Part shown: piece after piece, positions 7,084-64,000 of the stretch
How positions within the stretch are numbered: the stretch's first letter is position 1
Layout: every line of letters begins with the position of its first letter
Assembly (NCBI RefSeq): GCF_006345805.1
Contig: NC_043009.1
Span: forward strand, 68,076,001 to 68,140,000
Reading direction: 5' to 3'
Source: Octopus sinensis
Lineage: Eukaryota
DNA length: 64,000 nucleotides
Made by a program: the position numbers and the translations under genes
Notes under the pieces: generated by a model
Databases searched by the model: none
The model's input: the letters and a program-made list of their open reading frames with translations, nothing else
What the model was told of the DNA's origin: nothing

Positions 7084-7084
<1 letters not shown>

Positions 7085-7792: not shown

Positions 7793-7823
<31 letters not shown>

Positions 7824-7949
7824 CACGTCTACACTTTCTCTTTCTTCTCTCTCATCCACAACATGTGTCTATGTTTTATCATCGAACGAATGAACAAGCC
7901 ATCATGATTATTTTTGGCATAAATTTATCTAAACATATCTCCAAAATAA

Positions 7950-8400: not shown

Positions 8401-9304
8401 TTCTTAGGTCTTAGATCTGTCACGAATATACATGACCATTAAGCCGAAGTTCATTCGGTTTCCATGGTTAATGAGCAACCGAAACTACAACCGTCCGCTT
8501 CCACATCAGTCCGTCGCAGAGTTAACTCCCAGTTTTAGCTGCAACTCATTTCCAGGTTAGTGGATTTGGTCGACCTAAAAATCAAGTTGTTTTGCTCAAG
8601 AACAAAACGTGACACCCGGTTTGGGAATCGTGACTCCAACGCACTGTCCACTCGGCCACGTGCCTTCACCGGTAGAAATTCGAACAGCGTTAAATAAGGG
8701 TTTTATAGGACTTTAGTGCCCATTTAAGTAACGGCAAGAAAAGACTTTAAAGGTGGTCAATATAAATTTAACTAATGTTTATTAAAGATTTCATGACCAG
8801 TTTTTACTTTGTAATAACGATGTTTTAAAAATCCCACGGGTTAGATATGTTAAATAAATTATTTGAATTACTTACAGAGATATGAAGATCAATGTCTTTA
8901 ACAGACAAGAAACAGAGTGTTATTGCTTAAAAGTCTATGGTAAATGAGGGAGTTGACTGGAGGTGCCCTTCTGCTACTTCTTTTCAACTGGGCAGCGATT
9001 TTCTGATTAGGCGGCGAAACCGAATCGTGAATCGGTTTGTCCCAGAGCTTACAGCTTACTTACGGTCCTTCTTGAGTTTATTTCTTATTGATGAATGGTG
9101 GTTAAGATTAGAGTTTGCATTGCGAATGAGTAATTAGATAAGTCTTGGAAATGTCAGGATTTCAGAAAGGAAGAACTACAATCTCAGTGTCTATGGAAAT
9201 ATAGCATTTTACAGAACTGTCTGATCCATGTCAACATATGATAGACTTGTGATGAAACACATGCTGATCATGCATACACACATACACACGCAAGCATACA
9301 CAAG

Positions 9305-9344
<40 letters not shown>

Positions 9345-9869
9345 CACGCACACAAAACACGTATTAGCATTACATACATTCACACACATAGGCGCATAAA
9401 GTCACATAGGTTACACACATACAGTCCATGCATACTCACACAAACACATGCACACACACACACACACGCACACACATGAACACTCACATACACACACGCA
9501 CACACATTAACACACACATACACACACACACACAGACGTATCTGTTCAAGATGTCTCAATTATATAATATAAATAATCTGTCAATTTTCAGCCATTCTTA
9601 GAGTGAGTAAAAAAAAACACAATCTTGTCGAAACGTTTGAATGTTTAATGACCAATGTCATTAAAATAACCAGAAGATGAAAAGAATTTTCCGTCTTCAA
9701 AATATTCTCGTTTTTTCCGTGTCTAGTTTTGAAAAATACTCAGACCATCTTTGACAGTTTAAAGTTGTTGATCGACAATTAAGTAGGAATTACGTCACAC
9801 AACGAAGTGAGAGGTTGTTGCTCTTGTTGTTGTTAGTTACTTCTGGGTTACGCCGAATCGATCAACTCT

Positions 9870-10310
9870 GTAACGAAAGTGTTGCAGCTCTTAGACTGCG
9901 GCCATGCTGGGACTCCGTCTTGAGGAATTTTGGTCGAACGAATCGACCGCAGTGCTTATCATTCTTAAGCCTGCAACTTATTCGATCCTTCTGTATTTGC
10001 CAAACCGCTAAATTAAGAAGACGTAGACACACCAGCACAAGTTGTCAAGCAGTGGTAGGGGACAAACACATGCACACACACACACACACACACCACACAC
10101 ACACACGCACACACACACACACACATTCACACAGACATGTATGTATGTATGTGTATGCACGACGGGTTTCTATCAGTTTCTGTCTACCGAATCCACTCAC
10201 AAGACTTTGGTCGACCCGAGGTTATAGTAGATGGCACTTGTGCCACAGTGCCACGCACTAAGACTGAACCCGGCCAGGAAGCAAACATCTTACAATGCTG
10301 CCATGCCCGC
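9870..10310 (-). mobile_element. tRNA-derived SINE with internal (CA)n (octopus OR-like family)
   Basis: Shares blocks GACTGCGGCCATGCTGG, CAGTTTC..TCTACC.AATCCACTCACAAG.CTTTGGTCG.CCCGAGG and GTGCCACGCA with copies at 21.2, 23.4, 25.6, 26.7, 39.5, 44.4 and 46.1 kb. Confidence 0.8.
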
Positions 10311-10429
10311 AGCTGTGATAATCTTATTATCAAGCGCTACATACCTGGGACTTCATTATCGTATATAAACCATGCTTAAACTGAGGTGCTTAGCTGCTCT
10401 CTTTTACAGGTGCAGCGACTGCGTCTAGG

Positions 10430-11600
10430 CTTTCTCTTTAAAAAGATATCAGCAACGCGAAGAGTGCAAATGGCGAATGCGTCCGATTTTCTGTAGGTTC
10501 CGATGAAGATTAGATTCTGGTATATAAAGACGTGTTTAGTTGTTGTTCCTGGTGTTATTGTTCCGTTTGTTGCGAATCGTAGTTTTTTTAGTGATGATGG
10601 TCGTTATGTTTCCTCAATATGGCGTGACTAATGTTATGTTTCTCGATGTCGCCCCGTGATTGACGAAAGAATGCGCAGCGGGGATTCAGGTGTATAGCTG
10701 TATTGAATAGAAACTGTGTGTATATTGTTGTTACAGTTGTAATACTGTCAACTATCGATTTTATAGAAGGATATGTCTTGTGTCATTTTATCAGTTGGGT
10801 TATATGTGAAGTAGAGTTTCCTAATCACTCGAAATAATGATACGCAGATTAATTATGTGACTGATCATCACTGGTCAAGTGTTCTGTTTAATTCTTTAAT
10901 CGTAATTTTATTACACACGAAATGCATGTTTGAAATCTTGAAAAGTTAGTAAAGTGGTCCTACAGTTATACAAATCTCTTAAAAGAGAATTGTAGAGGGA
11001 TGCTGATTAAAACAAATTCTTGGTTAAAATGAAATGTTTGAAACCTTTAAGACGTCTGATGGCTTTAGCACTGCCACACCTTTCAAGCAGTTTTATGATT
11101 CCTTTAAAAACTTAAATTTCTGAAAGGGAAAAAACGGAAATTAATAAAGATGTATAATTAGTTAATTTGAAGGTTCCTGAACTGTGGAATGTAGTTGAAG
11201 ACTTGCCCAACGGTAAAATGGTTAGGAAACGCTGTTATAGAGAAAGTGATATGCTGGCTATATAGTTTAGCGGTGATTCCGTAAAATTTGTTTTGTGAGT
11301 TTTATTATTTGTTGGGTTAGGAATGTATAGTTTGTGCTGCGTTCATTGTGTGACTGCATTGAAGCTGTTTTGCGTAGGTTGCAAGGTTTTCTTCACCAGG
11401 CTTTCTTTGGACTTTATGAAATATTGTGAGCTCTGTTGTGGCTTTAAAATTGTAAGTTAAAAACTTCTGTATCATACTTAGATCTTCAAATATTTATGGT
11501 ACAATTTTACTAAAAGAGGTTGAAGTAGGGTTTGCAATCCGAATTCATAAAACTCTCACCAGTAACGCCTACGCAAATAAACGCATCGAATGGAGGGTTG
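10430..11600 (-). mobile_element. Decayed LINE RT remnant (tentative)
   Basis: Minus-strand fragments TVGPLY*LFKISNM and YLRVIRKLYF resemble RT motifs (S.LGPLLF.IYI.D, YLGV..D.KL.F). The sequence is heavily degraded. Confidence 0.35.
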
Positions 11601-11672
11601 TCGCTTGGGTGATGCAAACGTGTCGTCTGTCAGGAGTAATGAACCCCAAACAAATGGTGGAGTAGCGACGAT

Positions 11673-11736
<64 letters not shown>

Positions 11737-12723
11737 GACTACTACTCATTGTAATTTTATCCCCTTCCAGGTATTCTTCGGGTTAAATCAAAGTAGAGTG
11801 GGGTTTCGTTCTTTGCCTTCATAATTAAATCTGATTATTTGTTTTTTTTTGTCTTTTTACTTTGTTAGTCTGTTCAGTCATGTCTCAGCTGATTTTAGTT
11901 ACGTCGGGGTCGTCGTGTACCTTCTTTGGTAGACTTTTTTACCGTTTCTTTTTCCAGCAGATATAGCTACTTAATCGTTTCTGGAAATATACTTAAACTT
12001 GGCAAGGCCCCTCTGTCAGAAATTACACGGTAATTTGTCTCACAGCAATCGTTGTTAGAGTTGACATGGTATAAGTATTCTTCCGTTATTTCAATTTTGT
12101 AATTATTCCAGTTTCTATTATTAGACCAGAGCGTTCGAATCATAGTTGGCTCTAGGCCTCTCTTTTTGTTGTCTTGTGGTATTATTCGCCACAAAATATT
12201 ATTGTCCTCCATTATTTTCTCTTTAATATATTTAAGAATTCAGTTATAATTTTTGTCAATGAACAGCATTATGATAGAGTTAATCCTGCAGCTATTAAAG
12301 TATGAATTAACAATTAAACATGTAAGTCAACCGAAAGGTTCCAAATCAACCGAATTCTTAAATTTATACCTGTAATTAAATCACATTATGATCCCGTTTC
12401 TATACACCTCTCATTACGTCGAGAACTCTGATTAATAAATTGTATGCAGATTACTTAATACGCCTTGTAAATCATTCATCCATTAATACTGATCATTGAT
12501 TTCATTATCACACAATTAAAATTCCATACTTTCATAACCAAACAGCTGGAATGAACGACCGGTAAGAAAGGTTCTTAACTCTATCATTAAGTTCAATCAA
12601 ATACGTCGCCGAGTTTTACAGGTTTTCATTTCAATTGCCCAAACTAGCCAACAATCCGTGTGAGCATCGCAGTAACATATTCACCAGACGACACCACGTT
12701 ATACATTATAATAGCACTAATAA

Positions 12724-13315
12724 AGCGGCGAACCGGCAGGAACATTAGCACGCCGGGTGAAATGCGTAGCCGTACTTCGTCTGCTGTTACGTTCTGAGTT
12801 CAAATTCCGCCGAGATCGACTTTGCCTTTCATCCTTTCGGGGTCAATAAATTAAGTACCAGTTACGTACTGGAGTCGATGTAATCAATTTAATCCGTTTG
12901 TCTGTCCTTGTTTGTCCTATCTGTGTTTAGCCCATTGTGAGTAGTAAAGAAATAGAAATAGGTATTTCGTCTGCCGTTAAGTTCTGAGTTCAAATTCTGC
13001 CGAGGTCGACTTTGCCTTTCATCCTTTCGGGGTCAATTAAATAAATACCAGTTACGCACTGGCGTCGATATAATCGACTTAATCCGTCTGTCTGTTCTTG
13101 TTTATCTCCTCTGTATTTAGCCCCTGAAATAGGTATTTCATCTGTCTTTACGTCCTGAATTCAAATTCCGCCGAGGTCGACTATACCTTTTGCCTTTCAT
13201 TCTTTCAGGGTTGCTAAATTAAGTACCAGTTGCATACTTGAGTCGATCTAATCGACTGGCCCCGCTCCCCCAAAATTTCGGGCCTTGTGCCGAGAGTAGA
13301 AAAGAATATCTAGCA
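12724..13315 (+). mobile_element. tRNA-headed SINE with three tandem copies of a core of about 180-190 bp
   Basis: Head GGCGAACCGGCAG...TTAGCACGCCGGG followed by three copies of TTCTGAGTTCAAATTC.GCCGAGGTCGACTTTGCCTTTCATCCTTTCGGGGTC...AAGTACCAGTT. Confidence 0.85.
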
Positions 13316-13871
13316 TTAATTGCACAAACATTGTCCACTTTCTTTTATCGCAACTTAAATACAAGTCGACGAGTGGGCATCAAATTAGAGGAAGATATAC
13401 AACTACAAAAGGCATCTACCGAAGAGTTACAACAAGAAAAAGCAGTCAAAACCCCTCAAATATCTTCGTTCTCTCTTAAAGAAAGGGAAGATCACAACGA
13501 CCAATGTAATCTTATCGAAAAAGACATGGAGGTCGAGTCATATTCGAAATATCTTTGACCATAGATTCGCTCAATCAATGTTATCTTTCATGCTTTACTT
13601 GTTTCAGTCATTAGACTGCGGCCATGCTGGGGCACCGACTGGAATGATTTAATCAAACAAATTGACCCCAGTACTTTGTTTTTTGTAATCAGCTTCGTAT
13701 CCTATTCCTTTTTTTTATGTCGACCAGCTAAGTTACGGAACAATAAGAGCATATCTTTAATAATTACGTTTAATAATCAGCTGAGACAATGATGAACAGA
13801 TTAACATGAAAAAGAAGGCATCGAATCAGAATTATTGGCAAGGTTATTGCTACGATCAATGATACATAGGA

Positions 13872-14195
13872 GCACTCCGTCGGTTACGACGATGATGGTC
13901 ACAGCTGCTACGATCAACGGAACAGCTTGCCCGTGAAATTAACGTGCAAGTGGCTGAGCACTCCACAGACACGTGTAGCCTTAACGTAGTTCTCGGGGAT
14001 ATTCAGCATGACACAGAATGTGACACAGACTGGCCCTTTCAAATACAGGTACTACTCATTTTTGCCAGCTGAGTGAACTGGAGCAACGTGAAATAAAATG
14101 TCTTGTTCAAGGACACAACGCATCGCCAGGAATTGAACTCATGACTTTGCGATCTTGAGTCGAATACCCTAACCACTAAGCCACGCGCCTTCCCA
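13872..14195 (-). mobile_element. tRNA-derived CORE-type SINE (same family as 4996-5330)
   Basis: Reverse-complement similarity to 4996-5320 along its length. Confidence 0.85.
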
Positions 14196-14581
14196 AAGAT
14201 ACAGACATATAACAATGGATATAAATTATCATTATTTGTACATGTGGTCATCCGTATTATTACGGTTGGAGCCGTTGTTGCAGATATATTTGATCTTATA
14301 GTTGTGCTTCATTATTTACTTGTAGATTTAGTTCCAGTCGGAGGTTTGTTTTGAGTTTAGTAGCCTTGCTTGTAGTTGTTTCTGTACTAGAATTAATAGT
14401 AGTTGTAGTAGTAGTAGTTAGACGTGATTTTCGTTTCATCAGCGGTTTTAGTAACAACCATCGTCACTGTTACAGCGGTGATTTTAGTTATAGATGTGTT
14501 TTTATTTTCATGCAGCTTTGGCCATAGTCGGAGTCACGTTTAATTTGCTCTGCTAGGCTTGATTGTCTTTGCATAGTGGGG

Positions 14582-14618
<37 letters not shown>

Positions 14619-14885
14619 CTAGGTATATTATATATATATTATACATACATATATATATATATAATGTATTCTGTTGTGTCTAGGGAGAGTTTTATTGCGT
14701 CATAATTTAATACACTCACCGGTAAAATTTCCACTTATTTCTTTATTTTACTGGTGAGTGTGTTAAATTATAAGGCACCAAAAGAGAATGACTTTCCCCA
14801 GACACAATAGAATATGATTCAACACACAAACTCACAAAGAATCTTGCAAACCAAATCCAAAAACGAAATATATGATGTATGTGAT

Positions 14886-14959
<74 letters not shown>

Positions 14960-15214
14960 TAATTATCTGATGGGATATTAATCCTAACTTACAGGAAAAC
15001 AAACTTAATTTAGAAATACTAAATCAAATTTCACACAATATGATACATATATATAATAATTAGAAAAAAACACCTTTTATCAATTTAAAATAAACAATTA
15101 TATTACACCATCTAAAAAATTACATATAATAGAAATATTAAGATTAAAATAACAATAAAATACTCCCCCAAAAACGCCAATATATATATATATATATATT
15201 CAATATGTGTCCGT

Positions 15215-15394
15215 GTGTGTATCGTTGGCGTTTCTTTCCTCCGTATTGTTTTCTTTGATCTTTCCTTTTCCCAGGGTTCTGACGAAGAGCTCCGCTCGAA
15301 ACGTTAAATCCCCCTTCTTTCTTTCCTTTCCTAAGCGTCCAATAACACTATACTTGTTCCACATCCTCGCGTTGTTGTGTTTTCATGTTTGGAT

Positions 15395-15398
<4 letters not shown>
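15215..15398 (+). mobile_element. Penelope-type terminal-repeat fragment containing a minimal hammerhead motif
   Basis: CTGACGA-A-GAGC-tcc-GCTC-GAAA-CGTT at 15279-15305, in T-rich repeat context typical of PLE termini. Confidence 0.6.
15274..15313 (+). ncRNA. Minimal type I hammerhead ribozyme motif (intact core, weak helix I)
   Basis: Core CUGACGA, 4-bp helix II, GAAA, loopless palindromic helix III (ACGU) and GUU triplet. Helix I (gggtt/aaatccc) has a mismatch. Confidence 0.5.
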
Positions 15399-15441
<43 letters not shown>

Positions 15442-16008
15442 CGCATATTTATATGTATATGTGTGTGTGTATTTCGTTATTCTTTATACGTTTCAGCACT
15501 AAGGTTGTGACCATGCTGGAGCACCACCAGCGTAATCACCATTTCAATGTAATGGAAGATAGGAGAATTTATTTTATTAATCACTAGAATTGTTTCGATC
15601 CATCTAGCATAAATCCCTCACAGGGTCAGGAGCATCCGACGGTGCAGATGTGTGTCTTGTGGTGATAAATTGATGTAACTCGTTAAAATAACTGTTCCTC
15701 AATGTATCTCCTCAATTCGTGGAAAGAAAACCAGCAAACCAAAGAATATATCTACATTTATTTAGGAGATTAATAATAAAATAACACATGCGAAACAGAA
15801 ACGAACACGCAATACAATGGTGAGATAAGAGTGAGGCCTATGCTTTCAGTTTTATGATTATCACTCCAGAATTTAATATAACAATGGCCCAATCTATTTT
15901 TAAAGTTATTTATTATTCCTGTTCATGAAATTGATATAAAATATATACAAATGGCGTAAATGCCATGAAAATATATCACAATTTATCAGAGTTTTATCTA
16001 TTTTTCAG

Positions 16009-16076
16009 ACGTACCTACCAAAGTAAAAGTACACATGTATGTCAACAGCTTCGACTCCATTCGAGAATCGTCCATG
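16009..16076 (+). CDS. Internal 68-nt exon of a Cys-loop (GlyR/GABA/GluCl-like) ligand-gated ion channel subunit: xVPTKVKVHMYVNSFDSIRESSM (beta1/loop G and loop 2)
   Basis: Acceptor tttttcag at 16001-16008 and donor gtaagt at 16077. The peptide matches GlyR [23 protein letters not shown]. Its 68-nt length and phase 1 to phase 0 equal the GlyR exon 3 pattern. It joins in frame to the exon at 53548. It is absent from the ORF track because it is too short. Confidence 0.93.
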
Positions 16077-30675: not shown

Positions 30676-31550
30676 TACGTAGTTTGATAAATAAGTTGCC
30701 ATAGTAACGAAGCTAAAGCATGGAGAGTGAAGCCTCTTGACACAGATTGACCTTGAACCCTGCTTACTGTGCAAGCGCACTATGTTTTAACGTTGTAGCT
30801 CCCTTCCGCTCTTTACAGCTGTGCTTGGAAGGAAGGTGTGTCGCATGTGATCGTTGCATTGACCATAACAGAGAAAGTTGAGTAAAGAATATGTATGATA
30901 TTTTGCAAAGTTTTCAAAACGTTTTCATCTTTCCTGCTACAATCGAGGAGATCTTATGCAATTGAGACCCGAGTGTCTATTTGGTCAGTTGAAAGCAGTT
31001 TTTGCACAACTGGACAACTGACACGTTTCTCATATCCAACCATATCCAAATCTTCAGTAATAACGGACTGAACTAAACCGGAACTAATCCGCACATCCTC
31101 TGATAACTCACGGATGGTGATTCGACGATTCACAACTGCACACACATCTGCGATATTTTTTTTCAGTTCTACTGGTTGCGGGTCTTCCAGCATGTTCGTC
31201 AACATCGACATTTTTTTCGGCCATCTTAGAAACGTCGGAACCACTCGTACACTTGTGTGCGGCTCGTGCACACCTCTCCATACACTTTCTGCGACATTGC
31301 ATATGTCTCTGAGCAGGTATCGCCATGACAACTTTCTCTGTCTGTCTCTGTCATCACCAATGCGGCGATCACACGCTACACACCTTCCTTCCAAGCGCTA
31401 CTGAAAACAGCGAAAATGAGATACAACGTTAAAACTTAGTGCACATGTATAGCAGAGGTGAAGGTCAATCTGTGCCAATGGGCTTTACACTGTTTGCTTT
31501 AGCCTCGTTACTATGGCAACAGACTGGATACTTATTGATCATACCTCGTA
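30676..31550 (-). mobile_element. Internally deleted mariner with inverted terminal segments of about 200 bp
   Basis: TA-flanked ends (TACG..TTGATAAATAAG / CTTATTGATCATACCTCGTA). 30676-30870 is an imperfect reverse complement of about 31330-31550. The transposase remnant reads TQVYEWFRRF*DGR...HAGRPATSRT...NRRITIRELSEDVRIS. Confidence 0.85.
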
Positions 31551-33705: not shown

Positions 33706-35298
33706 GTAGTTGATAGGATTTTGATTAAAAGGCAATATGTTAAATTGATAAATGAAAATGAAAGTCAGTCGATAAAATCATTTCCCCGCTGTATATGCTT
33801 TTATGTAATTTATACTTGGAGAGTACCGAAGAATTCGGTGTTCTAACAAAACGCCGACAGAATATAAAGTTTCCTTTTGGTAAATAGTACCAATTCCGTC
33901 ACCAATAATTATATAATATAATACTGATTTCAGTTTTTTGGCAATTATGGATGATGGGGAGAGTTAATTACATCGACCCCAGCGCTTAACTGGTATTTAT
34001 TTTATCGACTCCGAAAATTGAATGTAAAACGACCTCAGCGTAATTTGAACTCAGAACGCAAAGACAGGGGAACTAGCGCGTTCTAATGATTCTGCCAGTT
34101 CGTCGTTTTGCATATAATTAAAATTATATATTATCATGTTAATTTTATCTAAATTAATTGGATACCATTTTATGTCCCTTCGCTTTTCATTCCAATAATT
34201 CCAACAAGATAATCTAGCTAACCATATCGATTCTCACCCAACCTTAGCTTGTATGTATTACTATTCGCCCGTCGCTACGTTCCGAGTTCAAATTTTGCCG
34301 AGGTCGACTTTGCCTTTCATCCTTTCGGGGTCGATAAATTTAGTACCAGTGAACCTCTGGGTTCAATACAAATCTACTAGTCCGCTCTTGTAAAATTTCA
34401 GGCCTTGTGCCTTCAGTAGAACGGATTATCATTATCATCGTTGTTCATTTCTCTGTCCTAATTATTCATTTATGACATGCGTACGAAATCTCCCGGACAA
34501 TGAACTGAATCGACACTGAATGCTACAGAATCTATTGAATATAGAAGAACAAAAGAGAGAAGAAACGGAATGTCAATGTTGAACAGGTGAGGGTTCAACT
34601 TTAAAAAAAGTACAGGAACGAATCTAAATACAAAATGGTATTTTTTATCTAATGGAAATTAGTTATCGGTTTCGAACGCAGCCGAAAAGAAAAAGAAAAA
34701 GAGAAGAATGCTCGTGGTGGGTCACAGTTCATTAAGCCAAATATAAATCGTAAATGGTTCTAACTCTGTAGGCCACCGACACAATGGGATAAGATAATTA
34801 TCAATATCTTGTTTCAGTGCAAATCGCAAATTATAAATGCGGCTCGGACTATTTATTCGTTCCAAGATATGACTTTCATCTTTTTTTTTTATTGATTAGA
34901 AAAAAAAAGAGAAAGAAAAACTTAACCATAAATGGATTTTAATTCAACACGCTCAAACGTAAAATCATTAACTCATTTAGTTCAAGACCGAAGCCACGTG
35001 TGCCAGTCATCGGTCAAAGAACGAAGAGGCTGCCATATAAGTTGTATTAAATATTTTCAAGTGTTTAATATGTTGGAAAACAAATAATTTCATCTCATTT
35101 GCTCCGGATATCATAAAATATGTGGAAGAATCGGTGAATTCTCAAGTGGCTTCATTCATTGAATGTTATACTCCAAGACCCCAAAACTCAGAACGAACAT
35201 TTAATCGAAACAAGAGATCAAAGACAAGGGAGATCAATAAAATTGTGTACTTATATGTTTATGTTCGTGTATACATATGTATATATATATAATATATA

Positions 35299-37499: not shown

Positions 37500-38420
37500 G
37501 CTTTGAATAATAGTTCAAATAACTTACACCCGAAAGGCATTTATTCATTAAATTATATCGCATCCTATTTTATTGTCTGTTGTTATTGTTGTGCTAGAAG
37601 CTCAATCCAGCGCTTGTACCATTCAGCTATTTTTGAGGCAAAAAATTTTTCCTTGCACCCATTTTTAACCTCATCCACATTGCTGAACATTCGTCCGTTC
37701 AGGAAATAAATCATGGCTGGGAAACGGTATAAATCTAATGGTGCAGGTAAGATACCACTTCCAGCTGCTCTGTTTGCGCTTGGTCACATTGGATGTGCAG
37801 AGAATTGTGCTTCTTCGATTGACGAATGTCGTGTGGCGGGCTTTCAAAGCTTCATATACTTGTTACATTTGTTGAGCGTAAAGGTTAACGTTCACAGCAT
37901 GACCTCCTAGGACAAGTTCGAAGTGCTACACCCGCTCGAAATTTCACCTTCTGTTCAAACTGCCCCTGTTTGACAACGGCTTCTGAAGCATAGCCCGAAT
38001 GAAGCCACTGGTTTATCATCTTAACATTACGAAAATAGATAAAGTTTTTTCATCACCAGTTACAATTCGACGTCAAAATCGGATATTTCAAGGATTTGCC
38101 AGCAGTTGTTTGCAAATGTTCACGCGTCGTTGAGTCTGGTCATTGGTCAGTTCACGAGAAACTTCCCAACAGCGTCTGTACAAAAGACTGAGCAAATGAA
38201 GGTAACGATTGATGGTGCTTTGTGAAGGACCAGGTTCTGCCGACAATGTATGCACGCATGCGCTTGGCTGTTGTTCTACAATTTCAAGTAAGGCTTCGTC
38301 TTCCACAACAGAAAATCTACCTGACCTTGGTTTGTTTTCGAGGTTGGTGTCACCTTCTTTGGACTGTCTGAACCAGCTTTGAACCACAGCTTCGTTGACA
38401 GTTGCTGGGGCTTTCACATC
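37500..38420 (-). mobile_element. Mariner transposase pseudogene (SETMAR/Hsmar-like)
   Basis: VVQSWFRQSKEGDTNLENKPRSGR...WEVSRELTNDQTQRR; HFELVLGGHAVNVNLYAQQM; FLNGRMFSNVDEVKN...FFASK..EWYKRWIE. It has stops and an internal deletion. Confidence 0.88.
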
Positions 38421-53547: not shown

Positions 53548-53771
53548 GACTTCTCAATGAATTTTATCATCACACAAAAATGGAATGATCCCAGGTTAAA
53601 ATTTTCCACGGGTACAGATGAAAATCTGGAACTGGATACAAAATTTATGGATAGAATCTGGGTACCGGATTTATATTTTGCCAATGAAAAGGAAGCAAAC
53701 TTCCACAATATCACTGTACCAAACCGTATGATGCATCTTCATTCTGATGGCACTGTTCGATACAGAGTAAG
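53548..53771 (+). CDS. Internal 224-nt exon of the same Cys-loop channel: DFSMNFIITQKWNDPRLKFSTGTDENLELDTKFMDRIWVPDLYFANEKEANFHNITVPNRMMHLHSDGTVRYRV(R) (loops D, A, E)
   Basis: Acceptor ttcttccttttag ends at 53547 and donor AG|gtaaga starts at 53772. Hallmark motifs WNDPRL, IWVPDLYFANEK and FHNITVPN are present. It aligns without gaps to GlyR alpha1 residues 57-131 and is 224 nt, like GlyR exon 4. Confidence 0.97.
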
Positions 53772-53879
53772 GTAAGAATTAGCAATTACACAATATCGCA
53801 AAAACAAAAAAAAACATATCTCGTAGATACCTAAAAGATGTTTTTTTCACTGGTGAATTTATAATATTTAATCAATATC

Positions 53880-53884
53880 TATCC

Positions 53885-53952
<68 letters not shown>

Positions 53953-53969
53953 GTCTATCTATCCATCAG

Positions 53970-54048
<79 letters not shown>

Positions 54049-54100
54049 GTCTCTCTCTCTCTCTCTCCCTCTCTCTCTGTCTATCTATCTGTCTGTCTAG
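53880..54100. repeat. (TATC)n/(TC)n microsatellite about 110 nt downstream of the 224-nt exon
   Basis: Seen directly. Confidence 0.95.
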
Positions 54101-54494
54101 TTTCAAAATAAGATGGGTGAATGTAGCAAGGGTGACACGTGTGAACGACGGAGCTAGCTTGAATAAAACAAAAAAAGAAAGGAAAAATGAGATTCACATA
54201 CTGTAATGTGTTTTTTTGCTTGACACTATTGTCCAAGGTTCCCGTGGTCTTTTCCGTAGGCTTTTCCTTCCACGAATATACCTAATCTGTTTTCCCTTTT
54301 TACATGGACATTTCTGTGATACACGATCCCTATTGATCGGCCCCCACTTGTTTTCTTTTTTTCTTCTCTTCTTCCCGAAAGAAAAACTCTACTCTGTATT
54401 TTGTCCCCTCTGTGTTCAGCCCTGTGTGGCCAATAAAGAAACATATCTGTCTGTCTATCTATCTATCTATCTATTCTATCTATCTATCTATCTA

Positions 54495-54566
<72 letters not shown>

Positions 54567-55314
54567 TATATATATATATGTGTGTGTATGTATGCATGTA
54601 TGTATATATATATACGTATGCTTGTATACAAGTATGTATATATGTATATAATGTGTGTATGTATATAAGTGCGTGTACCTTTCTATGTATATGTGCATAT
54701 GTATATGTATGTGTATATCTAAGGTAAAAGACAGACATCCTCTGTACCAATTTATTTTCTTCGAGAGAAACTGCAATACAGCGCCATTAAAAATTATTCT
54801 TTCCTCACGTATATTTATTGTTTCTCGTCATTTAATTATAATTTCAAATTTTGAGAATAATCGTTTCTTTTTTCTTTTTTCCTTCATCATATTTTATTCT
54901 ATTTCTCTCCTTTGTTACCTTCTCTTAATTTTCTTTACCGATCTTTGACTTTTATTAAAATATTGTGTAAAAACATCGTTTTCATTAAAGTTTTATTATA
55001 TTAATGCATTCTTTAAGTAATCTGATCGTGTAATTTATCACTTTTAAATCGATCGATTTTAAACAGGATGACGCTATCAAAATGGAATTAATACCTGTCA
55101 GCTTTCGAGAAAAATGAATGATGTTTTTGCCCTTCCAGTTAAACCACTAGATTCCCTTAGTTAATATACATTTCTATTACAATCTCGAAAGAAGGACAGA
55201 ACCGAGGAAAATAACTGGCTTCATAAACCACCGAGAATGCTTCTACGTGGTCACATGGCTCACAAGAAATAGGGACTAAATCTCCATCAAATCATTTTCC
55301 GAATATTTTCTGCT

Positions 55315-55640
55315 ACTGGCACTCTGTCGGTTACGATGACGAGGGTTCCAGTTCATCTGATTAATGGAAAAGCCTGCTCGTGAATTTAACGTGCAAGTGG
55401 CTGAGTACTCCACAGACACATGTACACTTAACGTAGCTCTCAGAGATATTCAGCGGGACAGAGTGTGTGACATGGTAGGGTTTTTGGAATACAGGTTCTA
55501 CTCATTTTTGCCAGGTGAGTGGACTGGAACAACGGGAAATAAAGTGTATTGGTCAAAGACAAAACGTGTCGCTAGGAATCGAACTCACGACCTTACAATC
55601 ATGCGCCGGATACTCTAACCACTAAGCCACGCGCCTTCAC
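55315..55640 (-). mobile_element. tRNA/CORE SINE (4996 family)
   Basis: Reverse-complement similarity to 4996-5320. Confidence 0.8.
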
Positions 55641-56016
55641 ACGAACGTTTGTGTTTAAAAAGGAAAGAAACATTAAATGTTTTCTTTAGTATCCTTCGAA
55701 AGGGATCCTAGTCAGATTGCCTGTGATGGTAGGGGTACAGTGTTACAACCAGACCGTGTATTACGTCCGCTGGGTCAGAGATTATCCGGAGATTAAAGTC
55801 TATCGGTGAATAAGCAGCAACAGCGAACAATAAGTTAAACCGAAGAAATACAGGGTTGACCAAAAGTCACCTGACAGTAAACCCAAAAACTTAATTCCAA
55901 GGTTTATTTATGATTAACAACTGAATGAATTTAATAAAAGCATCTAAACATGAAACATCATGAACATTTTTCAAAATGATATTAAAATCAAAATCAAAAT
56001 CAAATCAAATCACAAT

Positions 56017-56341
56017 TAAATGGAAATTGTAGTTGTGGTTCCTGTGCCGGTGACACGTAAAAAGCACCATCGGAACGTGGTCGATCCCAGCCCCCTCTCG
56101 GAGTGGTTGGCGTTAGGAAGGGCATCCAGCTGTAGAAACATTACCAGATCAGACTGGAACCTGGTGCAGCCTCCTGGCTTCCCAGACCTCAGTGGAACCG
56201 TCCAACCCATGCCAACATGGAAAACGGACGTTAAACGAAGATGATGATGATGATGACGACGACAATGATGATAATGATGATGACGATGATGATGATGATG
56301 ATGATGATGATGACGACGACAATGATGATAATGATGATGAC

Positions 56342-56425
<84 letters not shown>

Positions 56426-56430
56426 GGTGA
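56017..56430 (+). mobile_element. RTE-type LINE 3' end with long (GAT)n tail
   Basis: TTGGCGTTAGGAAGGGCATCCAGCTGTAGAAAC...GGACGTTAAACG followed by about 190 bp of (GAT)n. Confidence 0.65.
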
Positions 56431-57224
56431 AGATCTTGAGCGACACATTTTCTCATTCGAGTCAATACAGAATTAGAGATATTATTTATGGAATTTTGAT
56501 TTAGTATCGGGTGAGTCTTGGCCAAACCTGTATATCGCGTTACATAGATAAGGAAGGATTGCAAAATCTAACGTCTGGAGGCAGGAAGCCAAAAATGACT
56601 TGTTTCACGAATAATTCTAATACGAACGACTGGAAAAGAGAAAATGACGTCAGTCATCTACAGCACTTGAAGTTTCCTAAAGCTACCTGGGAACAGTGAT
56701 CAAACGTGATAGGTTTGTCGTCCCTGTGCTGTTGCTGTTGCTGTTGAGCGAACGGTCTTCGTACCAGAGCTCACAAGATGGGAGAGATCCGAAGCGTGGT
56801 CCTTTGCTATTCGTAAGATCCGCAGAAGAGAAAGCAAGGCAACCCCGAACACCGAGAGCATCGACGGATGGATGAATGCGCATCCAGGCTCAGCGGTTGC
56901 GTAGGAAGTCGGGGACAAGAAACAGGAAGAAAGGGTGAAAGAAAGGTAATGCGAAAGAGTATAACAGGGGGCCGCCACCACCCCCTGCCGGAGCTTCGCG
57001 GAGCTTTAGGTGTTTTCGCTCAATAAACACACACAACGCCCGGTCTGAGAATCGAAATGTCGTCTCTGTAGTTTGTAACCATGGCTGAAAATGTCTAGGA
57101 AGACGAAATGAAATATTCAAGGAAGGTTTCAACTGCTGAAACTATCTGAAGACAGTGACGTAACGGTGATGGTGGGATGAAGCAGTCAAGGTATTTGTCC
57201 ACTCCTTGTCTCTGTTGAAGATAC

Positions 57225-57527
57225 CATTGCACTAACAGTCCGTCAGTTGTGACGATGAGGGTTCTATTTGACCGTGAAATTAGCGGTCAAGTGGCCGAGC
57301 ACTCCACAGACACGTGTACCATTAACTTAGTTCTCAAGGAGATTCAGTGTGATACAGGATGTGACGAGGCTGGCTCTTTGAAATAAAGGTAGAACACATT
57401 TTCGCCAGCTGAGTGGCCTGGAGCAACGTGAAATAAAATATCTTGCACAAGAACACGCCGGTAATTGAACTCACGTCCTTACAATCGTAAGCCGAACACC
57501 CTAACCAATAAGCCACGCGCCTTCACC
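57225..57527 (-). mobile_element. tRNA/CORE SINE (4996 family)
   Basis: Reverse-complement similarity to 4996-5320. Confidence 0.75.
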
Positions 57528-57950
57528 CAAATACCTATTTTTTTACCACTCACAAGGGGCTTCATACAGAGGGGACAAACAAGGACAGACGAACGGATAA
57601 AGTCGATTATATTGACCCCAGTGCGTAACTGGTACTTATTTAATCGACCCCGAAAGGATGAAAGGCAAAGTCGACCTCGGCGGAATTTGAACTCAGAACA
57701 CAAAGACAGATGAAATACCTATTTCTTTACTGCCCACAAGGGGCTAAACACAGAGAGGACAAACAAGGACAGACAAACGGATTAAGTCAATTACATCGAC
57801 CCCAGTGTGTAACTGGTACTTATTTAATCGACCCCGAAAGGATGAAAGGCAAAGTACACCTCGGCGGAATTTGAACTCAGAACATAGCGGCAGACGAAAT
57901 ACCACTAAGCATTTCGCCCGGCGTGCTAACGTCTCTGCCAGCTCGCCGCC
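57528..57950 (-). mobile_element. tRNA-headed SINE with two tandem cores (12724 family)
   Basis: Reverse complement of the 12724/59436 family. Confidence 0.85.
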
Positions 57951-58494
57951 TTCCTTCACCGAAACACCACTGAACATTATTACATTACCAAAGCATCTTG
58001 ATATCAAAGACAATCTTGTTGAAGCCAGTCTAGCCAAACACCGTTACGATAACAGTCGCTCATTAACCAATATTAGTTATTCTGCAGGTACAAGATCACA
58101 GAAAGGATGTTCTTTTAGGGCGCTTAAACTGGAACTTTATATAAAGTCTTCCAAGTAAATCTGATATCAAGAACTTGTGGAAGCAATAAGTCCTTAGCTG
58201 CCGTAATCCAGGCTTTATAATACAAATTAGAAGCCGCGTGATTAAAAACAAGACCGGCATTATTCAAAGGAATGGTTAGAAACCACTTCACAAAAATCCT
58301 ACTTCAACTATTGATTATAAAATATTGGAGATGGAAGATTATAAACACTTTTTTGTTTTTAATCTCTAGACACAACAAATGATTTGATTTCAGAAAAATA
58401 TATACTTTTAAATAATTAGGAAACTGGTTCTAAGTTTCAAATATAATCTCTCTCTTTCATTCTCTCTCTCTCGCATTCATATATATATATATAT

Positions 58495-58561
<67 letters not shown>

Positions 58562-58769
58562 TGAGTGTGTGTTTATCTTTAGATAGATATATTATCCAGG
58601 CATTATAGCTCTCACTTATCTTCCCGGTTACGGCTAACCACATCGATTAATACTTAACATTTATGACTAGCAGTTGTCACTCACGCTGTAGATTCCCTCG
58701 ATGGGTAATTCCGTGTTCGCTTCACTGGATGGCAATATTATCTGCAGATACATACATACATACATATAT

Positions 58770-58830
<61 letters not shown>

Positions 58831-59435
58831 TATATATATTATATATATATATATATGTACGCACAGATGGACACACACACACACACACAAGCACATATAA
58901 ACATACATATATATATATATACATAAATGTGTGCGTGTAATGTAGACAATTGGTTGTGTATATAAACAGATGGGCAGCTTATTTCTCTGGGATTGGTCAA
59001 ATGGTGCAGACACTCTCACACACGTCACACATACACACATAATCACAAACACACACACACATCTATATGTATAATAGTTCTGAAATCAGATGTCTTAACG
59101 CAACACACAGACATGCGAATTATAGATATCTTAATAACCAGTACAAAGTCATAATCCCGTCTGTCCTCCCTCAGTCATATGCATAAATCACATCAGTATT
59201 TTAGTCAACACATTTCCACCTTTAGGACGCTTTATTTCGTATTCCCTTTCGTAGGCGATTCATTTCTATAACCTCATCACTTATTTGTCAACTTGGAATT
59301 ATAGAAAATAAAAAAAATAAAAAACAGAAGACATCTTAATATATTTAATGGAAAATACAAGATACGGACTAAACTGGTAATCTCGGCTGAATTTGATTGA
59401 TATTTTGCGATGATAATATTAATCCCACCGGTTAA

Positions 59436-60180
59436 GGCGGCGAGATGGCAGAATCGTTAGCACGCCGGGCGAAATGCTTAGCATTATTTCGTCTGCCGCT
59501 ACGTTCTGAGTTCAAATTCCCCCGAGGTCGACTTTGCCTTTCATCCTTTTGGGGTCGATTAAATAAGTACCAGTTACGCACTGGGGTCGATATAATCGAC
59601 TTAATCCGTTTGTCTGTCCTTGTTTGTCATCTCTGTGTTTAGCCCCTTGTGGGTAGTAAAGAAATAGGTATTTCGTCTGTCTTTATGTTCTGAGTTCAAA
59701 TTCCGCCGAGGTCAACTTTGCCTTTCATTCTTTCGGGGTCGATAAATTAAGTACCAGTTACGCACTGGGATCGATGTAATCGATTTAATCCCTTTGTCTG
59801 TCCTTGTTTGTCCCATCTATCTTTAGCCCCTTCAAGGCAGTAAAGAAATAAATATTAATTCCACTGGTTAAGCCGGCGAGGTGACAGAATTGTTAGAACG
59901 CCGGATAAAATATTTAGCTGCATTTCGTCCGTCTTTATGTCCCGAGTTCAAATTCTGCCGAGGTTGACATTGCCTTTAATCTTTTCAGGAGGGAAAAGGG
60001 TTAAAGTTGAACACTTGGATCAATGGAAACGACTTACCCCTCCCCAGAAATTACTGGCCTTGTGCCAAAATTTGAAACCAATATTAGTAAAGGTCGACTT
60101 TACCTTACACCCTATAGTGGTTGGTAAAATAAGTACCAGTTGTGTGCTGGGGTTGATATTGCTGATATTGTCAAAACTTG
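59436..60180 (+). mobile_element. Tandem array of the 12724-family SINE (two heads, about 4 cores)
   Basis: Heads at about 59436 and 59872, with the core GAGTTCAAATT...GAGGTCGACTTTGCCTTT... repeated. Confidence 0.85.
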
Positions 60181-60349
60181 TAACCAATTCTAATCCGACA
60201 ATCAAAGCTGTAGACAGAAGGAAAAGGTCTAACGTGACTCGTTTACTCGTGTTGCGTTTATGACAATATAATTATCGGGAGATTTGGTTGCTATTTTTAA
60301 ACGGCTCTATGACCTCTCCCATTTTCTCCCACTTAATGCTGCAACAAAT

Positions 60350-61325
60350 ATCATTATTTACATTTGACGGATATTTGACACAACGTTTGGGCTGATATAC
60401 CCTCGAGCCTTCATCAGGTGTCATGGGGAAATTTCGTACCTGGGTTCTCAGTCCTAAGGTATTTTACTATGTTGTTATTATTATTATTCAGGTCACTGCT
60501 TGGAATCGAACTCGGAATCTACGCCATATGCCCGTGGACAATTTTGGAGTGAATTTTAGGGCTTAAAAATCTAATATTTTCCTATCCTCCCTTAATACTG
60601 TTTCCCATATGCTATTCATATCTCTACTCGGTCTGCTTAGAAGGTCTCACTGGGGGAAGGGGTCTCCATTTTTCCATACATGATCAGCTATACCCGATTT
60701 ATCAATATCTCCCCGTGTCACAGCTGTGCAATGTTCGTCTACCCTTATTTTGAAGGGGCAGCATGCTTCGCCTTTGTATAACCTACCACTACTGCATGGG
60801 ATAGAGTACATGCAGTCTTTGGTCATATTCTCTTCTATTGGTGGTTTTACTCGGAGATATTTGCGAAGTGTTGTATTATTCTTGAATACTGTCCTGATGT
60901 CATATGGGCCGCATATCTTTCGTATCTTAACAACAAACAAGATGAGGACAAAAAATCCATCAAATGTAAATAGTGTAAATTGTTTGTTCCTTCTCGAGCC
61001 ATGCCTGACTCATAAGGCCGGATTCCCGGTTTCCCAGTTTCCTTGGCGTATAGGTTCCCCACCTGGACGGGACGCCTGTCCGTCGCAGGTGAGCTGGTAG
61101 ATGCAGGAGGAAAGAGTGAGAGAAAGTTGTGGCGAAAGAGTCAGCAGAAGTTGGCCATTACCTTCTGCCAGAGCCGCGTGGAGTTTGGGTGTTTCGCTCA
61201 TAAACACACACATCGCCCGGTCTGAGATTCGAACCCGCGAGTCCGCTGCTCTAACCATTAGGCCATGTGCCCCCGCAAATAATGTAAATAATGTACGTAA
61301 TTCCTCATCTCTTAAATATAGAACT
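60350..61325 (-). mobile_element. Penelope-like element remnant with GIY-YIG endonuclease, 3' UTR with tRNA-like box and mutated hammerhead, inverted terminal piece, and nested SINE at about 60985-61275
   Basis: ORF 60647-60940 reads KIRKICGPYDIRTVFK...CMYSIPCSSGRLYKGEACCPFKIRVDEH...SGIADHVW, a PLE GIY-YIG domain. The hammerhead at about 60378-60425 has GAAA changed to CAAA. Confidence 0.85.
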
Positions 61326-62071
61326 GGACGAAGAATATCATTCAATTGTAAGTTTTATAGGGAGTTAACAGCCATAACAAAATGCAGCCATCTCGAACTT
61401 GTGTCCGTGGACATTATTACGCTCCTGTAGTTTAACGTAAAGAAATGCTCGGCCGTTATTCACTGTTGCAATCGCTTACGGTTGGAAACGCTATCGCTTT
61501 ATGGAGTCCGTTAACAATTAAGTTAATTAGGCTAATGAGAACTGAATGGCTGTTCAGTTAAAAGCTCATCACACAAACACACATACAATAATTACCAACA
61601 CACAGACACACACACATATGCAATCACATACCCAAGCATACACTTATATTAGTTTTGTACATTTATAAATGCTTAGTGCAGTGAGGACGGTTGAGGTGCC
61701 CAAGAGAGCATAATGACCAGCTAAATAACGCAATGTGTTTTATTCGGTTTTCTATAGGCTTTGGGCGTTTCGTTCAACTTGTCTTTGGTTTCATTCACCT
61801 TTAAATACCTTCTAAAAATCGATAGAAAAAACATCAGCATAATAGTAGAGCGACCAGCAATACAGTAGCAGAGAAATCAAGTGATATAGATGAATTTGCT
61901 CAGGCTTGAAACTTCCCCTTACAGTTATTGACTCTGTACTTAAACCAACATTTCAGATCACAGTCTGTAGCCAAATAATCGCAGCACCTTGCCCACACTT
62001 GCTGAATACATTTTAAAAATATCTTTAAACATAATATTTATGCGTGAAAAGAGTTAATCGTTGTAGGTTTC

Positions 62072-62106
62072 GTATTATTATTATTGTTATTATTATTATT
62101 ATTTTA

Positions 62107-62179
<73 letters not shown>

Positions 62180-62186
62180 TTATATT

Positions 62187-62217
<31 letters not shown>

Positions 62218-62248
62218 TTTTATTATTATTATATTATTATTATTATTA

Positions 62249-62283
<35 letters not shown>

Positions 62284-62410
62284 TTATTATTATTTTATTA
62301 TTATTATTATTTTATTATTATTATTATTTTTATTATTATTATTATTATTATTATTTTATTATTATTATTTTATTATTATTATTTTATTATTATTATTCGT
62401 AGTAGTAGTA
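62072..62410. repeat. (ATT)n/(AGT)n microsatellite
   Basis: Seen directly. Confidence 0.97.
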
Positions 62411-62908
62411 GTAGTAGCAGGAGCAGTAGTTGTTGTTGTGGTCACAGCTATTGTTGTTTAGACCAAGGCCAACACTGACCGATCAGACCTATTTTCAAAA
62501 ACGTTCCTCTCACCATAATCCCATTTTTCTAATGTGACCTTCCTTTATATAAAACGATGAGATCCAATTACTATGAGATTTAACTGCTATTTTCAGTACG
62601 TAAAGTTACTGCATGTCGTGTATTACTCTCAGTCAATTTGTTAGTTGCTGGGAGGGGACATCGTATTTAGTTTTGCAGACATAATACTCTACGAAGTATG
62701 TTTAAATATTTATAAGTCAAAACTGATCCACTCTGTGTTAGCAGTGCGTTGTTTTCATTTTGTAAAGTAGATCTCTACAGATTTATCTGCGTAGAATTTA
62801 GAGCCACACTGAAAGCTGCGATGCTTTATATACGAATTCGTTTGGGAGTTCGTATGGGAATTTAATCATAACTAGAAAGGCGCAGTCCTCTCTTGGATTC
62901 GGGAGCCC

Positions 62909-62955
62909 CGTTACACCCACGTTACACCCGCGTTACACCCGCGTTACACCCGCGT
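62909..62955. repeat. 11-bp minisatellite (CGTTACACCCR)x4
   Basis: Four consecutive units starting at 62909, 62920, 62931 and 62942. Confidence 0.95.
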
Positions 62956-63065
62956 CACTTACTTGGTAACCTTGGAGCTGTGCGGGTCGTTAAATATTTG
63001 TTTAAATTTCCATGCCTTGAATCTGCATCTATCTTTTCTTACTGTTTTACTGTTTTTCTGATTTC

Positions 63066-63590
63066 ATGGCATCATCATCATCGTCGTCATCGTCAACAAA
63101 TTCATCATTATATTCATCATCATTATCATCATCATTATCATCATCATGATCTTCACCATTGTCATCATCGTTACTGTCTTCATCATCAGCATCATCATCA
63201 TCATCATTGTCGTCGTCGTCATCATCATCATCATCATCATCATTATCATCTCCGTCATCATCATTATCATCATCATTATGATCCTCACCATTGTCATCGT
63301 CATTGTCATCATCATCATCGTCATCATCATCATTAGCATCTTCATTACTATTGTCATCATCTTCATCATCATCATTCATCACCACCACCACCACCACCAC
63401 CACCATCATCATCTTCATCATCACCATTATCCTTTACACCCAGAACAATCACCATTACAACCACCATCACCCGTCATTTTCACCATCCTCCCCATCGTGA
63501 TTTTTACTATCCACCCCCTTCTCTTCATCACCACCAACAACAAAAACAACACCAACTGCACCAGCATCATCAACAACAACATCCCTAAGC
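63066..63590. repeat. Long imperfect (CAT)n/(CAC)n/(CAA)n trinucleotide tract
   Basis: Seen directly. It ends about 100 nt upstream of the Cys-loop exon acceptor. Confidence 0.97.
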
Positions 63591-63689
63591 TGCTGCGCTT
63601 TAAGTTTGTCGATTTAATCTAGTAAAACCCATGCTAACTCCACATGTGACATGTAGAAAGAGTAATTTTTCTTCTCCCTTCCTTTCCAG

Positions 63690-63772
63690 ATTAACTATGA
63701 CAGCCACATGTCCGATGAAACTGGAAAAGTTCCCCCTTGATATACAAACTTGCTCGATATTTATAAAAAGCT
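63690..63772 (+). CDS. Internal 83-nt exon carrying the Cys-loop: (R)LTMTATCPMKLEKFPLDIQTCSIFIKS(F/Y)
   Basis: Acceptor cttctcccttcctttccag ends at 63689, with a CTAAC branch-like motif at about 63634, and donor gtaagt starts at 63773. It contains the C-x13-C loop CPMKLEKFPLDIQTC. Phase 2 matches the upstream exon (AG|A = Arg), and it is 83 nt, like GlyR exon 5. Confidence 0.97.
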
Positions 63773-64000
63773 GTAAGTTCTCGATATTTCTTTTGTTTTT
63801 CTTAGTCTTTTTTTCAATTTTTATTTTTGCTTGTTTATTTTGTTCCTTCTCTTCTTCACCACCCTCCCCTACCCCCCGAACACCCCCTCCTTCGCTACCG
63901 CTAACATAACTGGAACTTTGCCTAATTCTCTCTAATTGCTTGTAATATCATACTTTTCAATATGTTGCCTTTTTTCTTCTTTCCCTATCTCTCTTTATAT

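Follow-up and report, generated by a model that had tools for sequence, protein, structure and literature searches.

A conserved, GlyR-like Cys-loop channel subunit of octopus with every polar agonist contact replaced

The DNA analysed here is a 64,000-nucleotide window of the Octopus sinensis genome (assembly GCF_006345805.1, contig NC_043009.1, positions 68,076,001 to 68,140,000), which contains three exons of a gene for a subunit of a Cys-loop pentameric ligand-gated ion channel (pLGIC) of the glycine receptor (GlyR) and glutamate-gated chloride channel (GluCl) type. Judged by its residues, this anion-type subunit has the classical motif for amino-acid agonists dismantled and yet strictly conserved in that state. 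All four polar contacts that true GlyRs make with glycine (R65, S129, E157 and T204; mature GlyR numbering is used throughout) are replaced, and the aromatics F159, Y202 and F207 are kept. The gene belongs to a molluscan clade of GlyR/GluCl-type subunits. The best overall explanation, to which we assign a probability of about 0.5, combines this membership with a proposed agonist-gated channel in which the charge anchors would be relocated.

In the orthosteric site of GlyR, the principal face provides F159, Y202, T204 and F207, the complementary face provides R65 and S129, and E157 pairs with the amines of ligands (PMC6465966). The octopus subunit carries I63, T65, H119, R129 and K157 in the part encoded by the window, and V160, E203 and E204 in the remainder of the full-length protein. 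The two carboxylate anchors on the complementary face of GlyR are absent (T65 and R129 stand in place of R65 and S129), as are E157 and T204 on the principal face (K157 and E204). The aromatic box retains F159, Y202 and F207, with F63 changed to Ile. Loop B reads KSFVY, compared with ESFGY in GlyR, and loop C reads C-HRDYEENNFT-C, compared with C-TKHYNTGKFT-C, so that both N203 and T204 have become Glu. The arginines of known GluCls are also missing: loop A (YFANEK) has no lophotrochozoan GluCl-type Arg (FRNEK), the R65/S129 background of that type is gone as well, and the loop G Arg of ecdysozoan GluCls is absent, with N46 in exon 3 at the corresponding place. An earlier interpretation, made from the letters of the window (the sequence-only reading), had described a GlyR-like subunit without the Arg of loop D, the Ser of loop E or the Glu of loop B and without any GluCl-type Arg in loop G or loop A, and this description stands. 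The loop G residues Y44 and N46 that it named are real too; their exon sits outside the span it covered, 37.5 kb upstream.

The sequence-only reading had further called the pocket more basic. This is correct for the part inside the window, but the full-length loop C adds E203 and E204, which lie on the same face as K157, so that charge has been relocated rather than added. As aligned, the pocket is rewired, not simply more basic. The idea of an anionic ligand, raised at the same time, is weakened by the two loop C glutamates. H119, which had been listed among the altered residues, is ordinary in lophotrochozoan relatives and occurs in canonical R65/S129/E157 subunits, and therefore falls outside the rewiring.

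The gene encodes a Cys-loop pLGIC subunit of the GlyR/GluCl type. The 124 amino acids encoded in the window match O. sinensis XP_036364398.1 (466 residues, annotated as ‘glycine receptor subunit alphaZ1’) and O. vulgaris CAI9732292 and CAI9732293 (annotated as ‘alphaZ1-like’) at 100% (P0287/P0283/P0288 in our collection), and O. bimaculoides XP_052828513 differs from the window peptide at two residues. The full-length cephalopod proteins were retrieved with HMMER from 1.8 billion representative proteins and then with word-indexed searches. Full-length P0287 matches the Pfam families PF02931 (8e-47) and PF02932 (4e-24), that is, Neur_chan_LBD plus Neur_chan_memb. It has a 15-residue Cys-loop with an FPxD motif (CPMKLEKFPLDIQTC, encoded in exon 5) and, encoded outside the window, the second disulfide in loop C (C198–C209) that marks GlyR/GluCl-type subunits; this loop aligns gap-free with CTKHYNTGKFTC of GlyR. 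The gating elements (Cys-loop FPLD, pre-M1 Arg and M2–M3 loop) are intact. The best solved relatives are GlyR alpha3, alpha1 and alpha2 (E ~1e-97), followed by GlyR beta, GABA-A beta and GluCl alpha, and the HMMER alignment to GlyR alpha3 has no gap across loop B, loop C and M2. Spliced together, exons 4 and 5 encode 102 residues that align gap-free with human GlyR alpha3 (PDB 5cfb residues 57–156, E 6.5e-34), bearing out the gap-free GlyR alignment of the sequence-only reading; 48 of the 102 residues are shared with GlyR alpha1 in our own gap-free comparison. An AlphaFold2 model of the monomer (pLDDT 73) had GlyR alpha3 (5vdi) as its top Foldseek match (TM 0.79). The monomer carries no interface geometry, and the slightly closer fit of the model to agonist-bound than to apo GlyR structures is not interpretable.

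An ordinary glycine-, GABA- or glutamate-gated chloride channel that merely tolerates the substitutions would be in keeping with this likeness: identity to GlyR alpha subunits is 38–47%, the gating elements are intact and the automatic annotation is glycine receptor. However, four of the seven residues that define amino-acid-agonist sites are changed, both charged anchors among them, and neither loop A nor loop G offers an Arg for glutamate (PMC4338433). Canonical R65/S129/E157 subunits, such as P0209, also exist separately in Octopus. We therefore regard an ordinary channel as very unlikely.

In cephalopods, the rewired pocket occurs in three paralogous groups, each with I63/T65/H119/R129/K157/V160/E203/E204; the window gene belongs to group C. 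Group B (CAI9732291/XP_029644278) lies on the same contig as group C with consecutive accession numbers in three species, and the two appear to be tandem neighbours on the basis solely of accession numbering and shared contigs; group A (CAI9722939) is on a separate chromosome-scale contig. The sequence-only reading had proposed a phylogeny as a check. In our neighbour-joining tree (86 sequences, 374 columns, 200 bootstraps), the cephalopod trio is monophyletic with 100% bootstrap, and a wider clade of bivalve, gastropod and cephalopod subunits that lack R65 and carry R/K129 is monophyletic with 86%. The tree sets this clade apart from canonical R65/S129/E157 molluscan subunits, from the type with a loop A Arg (FRNEK) and from vertebrate GlyRs. 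The octopus gene belongs to it by its non-Arg residue at 65, Arg/Lys at 129, H119 and monophyly. Bivalve and gastropod members (oysters, mussels, scallops, clams, Solemya, Haliotis, Gigantopelta and Patella) have T, V, S, Q, E, H or D at position 65, never Arg, together with R/K129, Q157, H119 and a loop C that is acidic but variable. T65, R129 and K157, whose conservation across cephalopods had been named as another check, are all conserved in the trio; the T65/R129 pattern is mollusc-wide, extending to bivalves and gastropods, and K157 together with E203/E204 is restricted to the cephalopod trio.

Arginine at the two sites follows an exclusive pattern. Among 367 aligned relatives, R65 and R/K129 never occur together (R65 alone is present in 250, R/K129 alone in 78 and neither in 39), and a protein of the octocoral Dendronephthya (P0144) combines T65 and R129 with E157, apparently through an independent relocation of the Arg. 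Both observations fit the shift of the Arg from strand beta2 to beta6 that had been suggested for the octopus gene.

Other pocket variants were seen among the relatives. Two further O. sinensis proteins encoded on the same 72.3-Mb contig as the gene, P0328 and P0332, are members of the non-R65 clade with Q157 (T65/R129) or E157 (T65/K129); with the trio, they bring the number of such subunits in octopus to at least five. The bivalve proteins P0175, P0176, P0179 and P0331 (Mactra, Mercenaria and Ruditapes) have R129 and a loop A Arg (FRNEK/VRNEK) but no R65, which makes a different two-Arg pocket. P0366 of the chiton Liolophura, with N65/S129/R157, joins the cephalopod trio in the tree with weak support (56%).

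Conservation within the trio is concentrated in the pocket, which across 17 trio sequences is invariant at 18 of 20 predefined positions, compared with 51% of the extracellular domain (hypergeometric P ~1e-4, a value inflated by phylogenetic non-independence). Relative to orthologue cDNAs, the proportion of non-synonymous differences (pN) is 0.09–0.10 and that of synonymous differences (pS) 0.86–0.88; because synonymous sites are saturated, these values do not convert into a numeric dN/dS. All four Thr codons are used for T65 among the window gene and its orthologues and paralogues, and R129 is encoded by AGA in the window and by CGA and AGG in relatives, so that the codon has changed while the residue was kept.

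One series of the Sequence Read Archive (SRA) holds intronless contigs of 1.4–2.0 kb with complete open reading frames (ORFs) for groups A, B and C, including 20 contigs for the group C orthologue. Because the gene has introns of 10–37 kb, these contigs represent spliced mRNAs, and those of the orthologue read through both exon junctions without a break. Their species of origin is probably a decapodiform, as its group A sequence clusters with cuttlefish. All three paralogues are thus transcribed in a related cephalopod. A pseudogene, an unexpressed relic or an assembly artefact might still be argued from the fact that expression of the O. vulgaris/sinensis copy was not directly seen. Yet neither the reading frames nor the splice sites are broken, two assemblies give the same sequence and a third nearly the same, purifying selection is strong across deeply diverged cephalopods, and full-length spliced transcripts of the orthologue are present in 20 contigs; on assembly identity, transcripts and purifying selection, this explanation is refuted for practical purposes. 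Assembly error, which had been named as a possible undoing of the sequence-only reading, is excluded by the identity of the peptide in two independent Octopus assemblies.

K157 is encoded by AAA in each of the five cephalopod sequences that were examined (the window and four orthologue or paralogue cDNAs), although synonymous sites elsewhere are saturated. If the first base of this codon underwent adenosine-to-inosine editing, the canonical Glu would result; in the transcript contigs, the consensus is Lys.

How might such a pocket work? We propose that the subunit still makes an agonist-gated chloride channel in which both charge anchors have been relocated, a claim that we hold at somewhat less than an even chance. 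The acidic (carboxylate) group, held in GlyR by R65, would be anchored instead by R129 on beta6, which neighbours R65 in the sheet. For the amine, E157 would give way as anchor to the two glutamates of loop C and to the aromatics that are still present (Y99, F159, Y202 and F207). K157 may either be a second anion anchor or form a salt bridge with E203/E204. On this model, the channel would be opened by a small molecule, zwitterionic or acidic, and not by glycine in its classical pose. Within the family, recognition of glutamate or other carboxylates has arisen repeatedly when an Arg or Lys was gained on one of loops G, A and C (PMC4338433, PMC13335744), and many lophotrochozoan subunits that lack the amino-acid-agonist motif have been described as new classes (PMC4338433).

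Several points weigh against this relocated-anchor mechanism. Each of its steps, including the geometry of R129, K157 and E203/E204, is deduced from sequence. The related sequences behind the pocket statistic are not independent, and the transcripts come from a related cephalopod rather than directly from the Octopus copy. Outside cephalopods, the loop C acids have no fixed position, and Solemya has none. Finally, mutating the equivalent of E157 in GABA-A beta2 mainly abolishes agonist sensitivity and raises spontaneous opening (PMC7026498), so that a reading without an agonist fits equally well.

Such a reading would have the site liganded by its own side chains: a pair of R129 on the complementary face and E204 on the principal face, perhaps with K157 and E203, would take up the space at the interface and lock it with no agonist bound, giving a tonic or leak chloride conductance or a channel that responds to pH, ions or a modulator at some other site. 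The four polar agonist contacts have indeed given way to mutually complementary charges that are invariant in the three paralogues. The hydroxyls of S129 and T204 in GlyR contact the same ligand carboxylate atoms (PMC6465966), from which we infer that R129 and E204 should reach each other in an inter-subunit salt bridge, and mutation of E155 in GABA-A beta2 results in large spontaneous activity (PMC7026498). However, the cation–pi aromatics F159, Y202 and F207 are strictly kept, which would be unexpected without an amine ligand, and members outside cephalopods have Q157 and variable loop C acids, so that the bridge network is not ancestral. We consider a self-liganded site unlikely, although it is the main rival. 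Similarly doubtful, in our view, is a two-sided alternative: either the site of the trio is occupied by its own side chains, with R129–E204 and K157–E203 mimicking carboxylate and ammonium in a tonic or otherwise-gated chloride channel, or R129 and K157 represent a further independent origin of glutamate/aspartate recognition, on residues never used before.

The pore bears on whether the subunit, in the preferred agonist-gated reading, acts on its own. In its M2 segment (TAARISLSSLTILTMITQRQS), Ala occupies −2', Leu 6' and Arg 15'. The anion-selectivity motif (P/A-A-R) at the cytoplasmic end of M2 is present as TAAR; it reads VPAR in the paralogues and SAAR in both GlyR beta and GABA-A beta. 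Both cephalopod paralogues retain Pro-Ala-Arg and Thr 6'. Across the molluscan clade, 15' is basic (R/K), at the alcohol/anaesthetic position S267 of GlyR alpha1, and the 19' Arg of GlyR is absent. The GlyR-beta-like pore (Ala −2' and a bulky residue at 6') points to a heteromer partner, and the subunit is most likely, from its M2 residues, a beta-like partner in heteromers with its paralogues.

A more radical version would give the subunit a role that is purely structural or accessory: with an empty pocket of its own, it would tune heteromers with agonist sites from other subunits. This had been offered in the sequence-only reading, and Ala −2' and Leu 6', like GlyR beta and set against PAR and Thr 6' in the paralogues, lend it some support, as do the adjoining paralogue suggested by accession numbering and the transcription of all three paralogues in one SRA series. 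But a silent pocket is expected to drift, and no part of the extracellular domain is more conserved than this one, which does not differ between the three paralogues even though two of them have a canonical pore. Such strict conservation is hard to reconcile with a ligand-blind pocket, and the data imply no partner with a canonical pocket; we consider a purely structural role quite unlikely.

The window comprises exons 3–5 of the gene (Table 1), all on the plus strand and with canonical splice sites; the N-terminal exons and everything past S158 lie outside, with the end of loop B, loop C and M1–M4 encoded beyond base 64000. Neither a motif scan nor tblastn with the full-length protein detected exon 1 or 2 in bases 1–16008, and tblastn of the full-length protein against the window gave no exon besides the three. 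The exon sizes (68, 224 and 83 bp) presumably match the conserved gene structure of vertebrate GlyR and GABA-A receptors. Exon 4 is bordered by the acceptor ttttag/GAC and the donor GTAAG/gtaaga, and an orthologous exon 4 (locus L001) has the same splice sites and residues. Exon 5 lies between ccag/A and AGCT/gtaagt, and its final T opens the F159 codon. The span 53548–63772, the codon positions of T65, R129 and K157 and the residues I63, H119 and Y128 given by the sequence-only reading proved correct to the base. Isoform P0287 differs from P0283/P0288 by an Arg-rich insert of ~45 residues (GHVPPPMVRIDAGTRSRYG...RKEELLK) in the interval between signal peptide and N-terminal helix, which suggests an alternative exon upstream of the window.

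Table 1 Features of the octopus subunit gene and of its introns in the 64-kb window
Feature	Position	Strand	Details
Exon 3, 68 bp	16009–16076	+	beta1 strand and loop G: (D)VPTKVKVHMYVNSFDSIRESSM, Y44, N46; found by tblastn; splice sites cag/AC...ATG/gtaagt
Intron, 37,471 bp	16077–53547	+	Microsatellites and interspersed repeats; ORF lists contain low-complexity ORFs only
Exon 4, 224 bp	53548–53771	+	Loop D (I63, T65), loop A (YFANEK), loop E (M117, H119, Y128, R129)
I63 codon	53566–53568	+	ATC
T65 codon	53572–53574	+	ACA; site of carboxylate-binding Arg in GlyR
H119 codon	53734–53736	+	CAT
Y128 codon	53761–53763	+	TAC
R129 codon	53764–53766	+	AGA; Ser in GlyR
Intron, 9,918 bp	53772–63689	+	(TATC)n, (GAT)n, (TAT)n and (CAT)n arrays; inverted pair of the 184-bp-unit repeat
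Exon 5, 83 bp	63690–63772	+	End of beta6, Cys-loop (C138...C152, FPLD), start of loop B (IKS)
K157 codon	63766–63768	+	AAA; E157 in GlyR, E155 in GABA-A beta
Start of next intron	63773–64000	+	gtaagt
Microsatellite	53876–54099		Exon 4/exon 5 intron
Microsatellite	56240–56411		Exon 4/exon 5 intron
Microsatellite	62073–62397		Exon 4/exon 5 intron
Microsatellite	63070–63431		Exon 4/exon 5 intron
Copy of 184-bp-unit repeat	12772–13257	−	
Copy of 184-bp-unit repeat	33962–34371		
Copy of 184-bp-unit repeat	57529–57903	+	Exon 4/exon 5 intron
Copy of 184-bp-unit repeat	59485–59856	−	Exon 4/exon 5 intron
Helix-turn-helix ORF	30954–31394	−	37-kb intron
Helix-turn-helix ORF	38088–38417	−	37-kb intron

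Outside the three exons, the window is intronic and rich in repeats. An interspersed repeat, the dimer of a 184-bp unit, is present in copies that are 83–90% identical, two of them inverted with 1.6 kb between them in the intron that separates exons 4 and 5. The microsatellites of that intron start ~100 bp past the exon 4 donor with (TATC)55, continue with (GAT)57 and (TAT)112 and end with (CAT)120, which stops 259 bp short of the exon 5 acceptor. The two ORFs with mariner-like helix-turn-helix remnants in the 37-kb intron have weak Pfam matches under threshold (HTH_41 and HTH_32) and look like decayed N-termini of mariner-type transposases.

Courtney et al. (2025, bioRxiv 10.1101/2025.04.02.646353) screened 41 Octopus ligand-gated channels, of which the text describes only DopC1 and AChRB1; motif searches of the supplementary alignment, which is itself gapped and incomplete, gave no match to the subunit. 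A curated 2025 list of characterised lophotrochozoan anionic GABA-A-like channels comprises two Aplysia GluCls, SmGluCl-1 to -3, Alvinella pHCl and the glycine-gated Alpo5/6. Literature searches by annotation name and octopus found no paper on the gene, nor any functional characterisation of the gene or its clade, in line with the orphan status that the sequence-only reading had assigned to it. Alpo5/6 are anion-selective; an alvinellid relative in our collection (P0189) has the canonical R65/E157 pocket.

If the pocket is read correctly, the ‘glycine receptors’ that databases list for octopus and other molluscs in this clade could not bind glycine in the known way, and inference of glycinergic inhibition in cephalopod brains from such annotations is unsafe because of these replaced pockets. 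The clade would amount to a natural experiment in which both charge anchors of a neurotransmitter pocket were moved and then kept for hundreds of millions of years, with three copies in the animals that have the most complex invertebrate brains. Its trigger, once known, would bring cephalopod neurobiology an additional transmitter–receptor pair, or else a chloride conductance that needs no ligand, and would extend the known routes by which ligand specificity evolves in a drug-target superfamily.

Among known systems, the orthotopic carboxylate site of GLIC has a similar gross charge pattern, with basic residues on loops E and B and two Glu on loop C, and carboxylates bind there and modulate the channel, which has no classical agonist (PMC10859675). 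GLIC is a bacterial cation channel, unlike the octopus subunit. In a manual alignment, its R105 would fall at GlyR R131 and its R133 at GlyR F159; as a positional equivalent GLIC failed, and we keep the analogy as a lead only.

Closest in sequence and fold are the GlyR alpha subunits (GLRA1–4; PDB 5cfb, 5vdi, 9boy and 6plr), at E ~1e-97, TM 0.79 and 38% identity. Common to both are the Cys-loop, the second loop C disulfide, loop A FANEK, F159, Y161, Y202, F207, R131 and the gating elements. The octopus subunit differs in the pocket by R65T, S129R, E157K, T204E, N203E, F63I and G160V, and in the pore by Ala for Pro at −2', Leu for Thr at 6', Arg for Ser at 15' and the absence of the 19' Arg. 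Judged by its pocket, it is not a pharmacological GlyR. GlyR beta, the accessory partner of alpha, resembles it in Ala −2' (SAAR, compared with TAAR) and in a bulky hydrophobic residue at 6' (Phe, compared with Leu), but retains R65, S129 and E157 and has a long gephyrin-binding M3–M4 loop that the octopus subunit lacks. The lophotrochozoan GluCls (Aplysia GluCl and SmGluCl; Lynagh et al. 2015, PMC4338433) belong to the same broad GlyR/GluCl radiation and illustrate how a moved or added pocket Arg creates a new specificity; they retain R65/S129 and add a loop A Arg (FRNEK), whereas the octopus subunit has Ala in loop A and neither R65 nor S129.

The molluscan ‘glycine receptor alpha-2-like’ subunits (Magallana, Mytilus, Mercenaria, Haliotis, Gigantopelta and Patella) are members of the same clade and share a non-Arg residue at 65, R/K129, H119 and an acidic loop C, with a PAR pore and a basic 15' in M2, but have Q157 instead of K157, F63 instead of I63 and no fixed YEEN motif in loop C. 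Orphan invertebrate pLGICs with divergent pockets are common; what is distinctive here, as the alignments indicate, is that a trio specific to cephalopods has replaced every polar agonist contact, in a compensated way, and has conserved the result.

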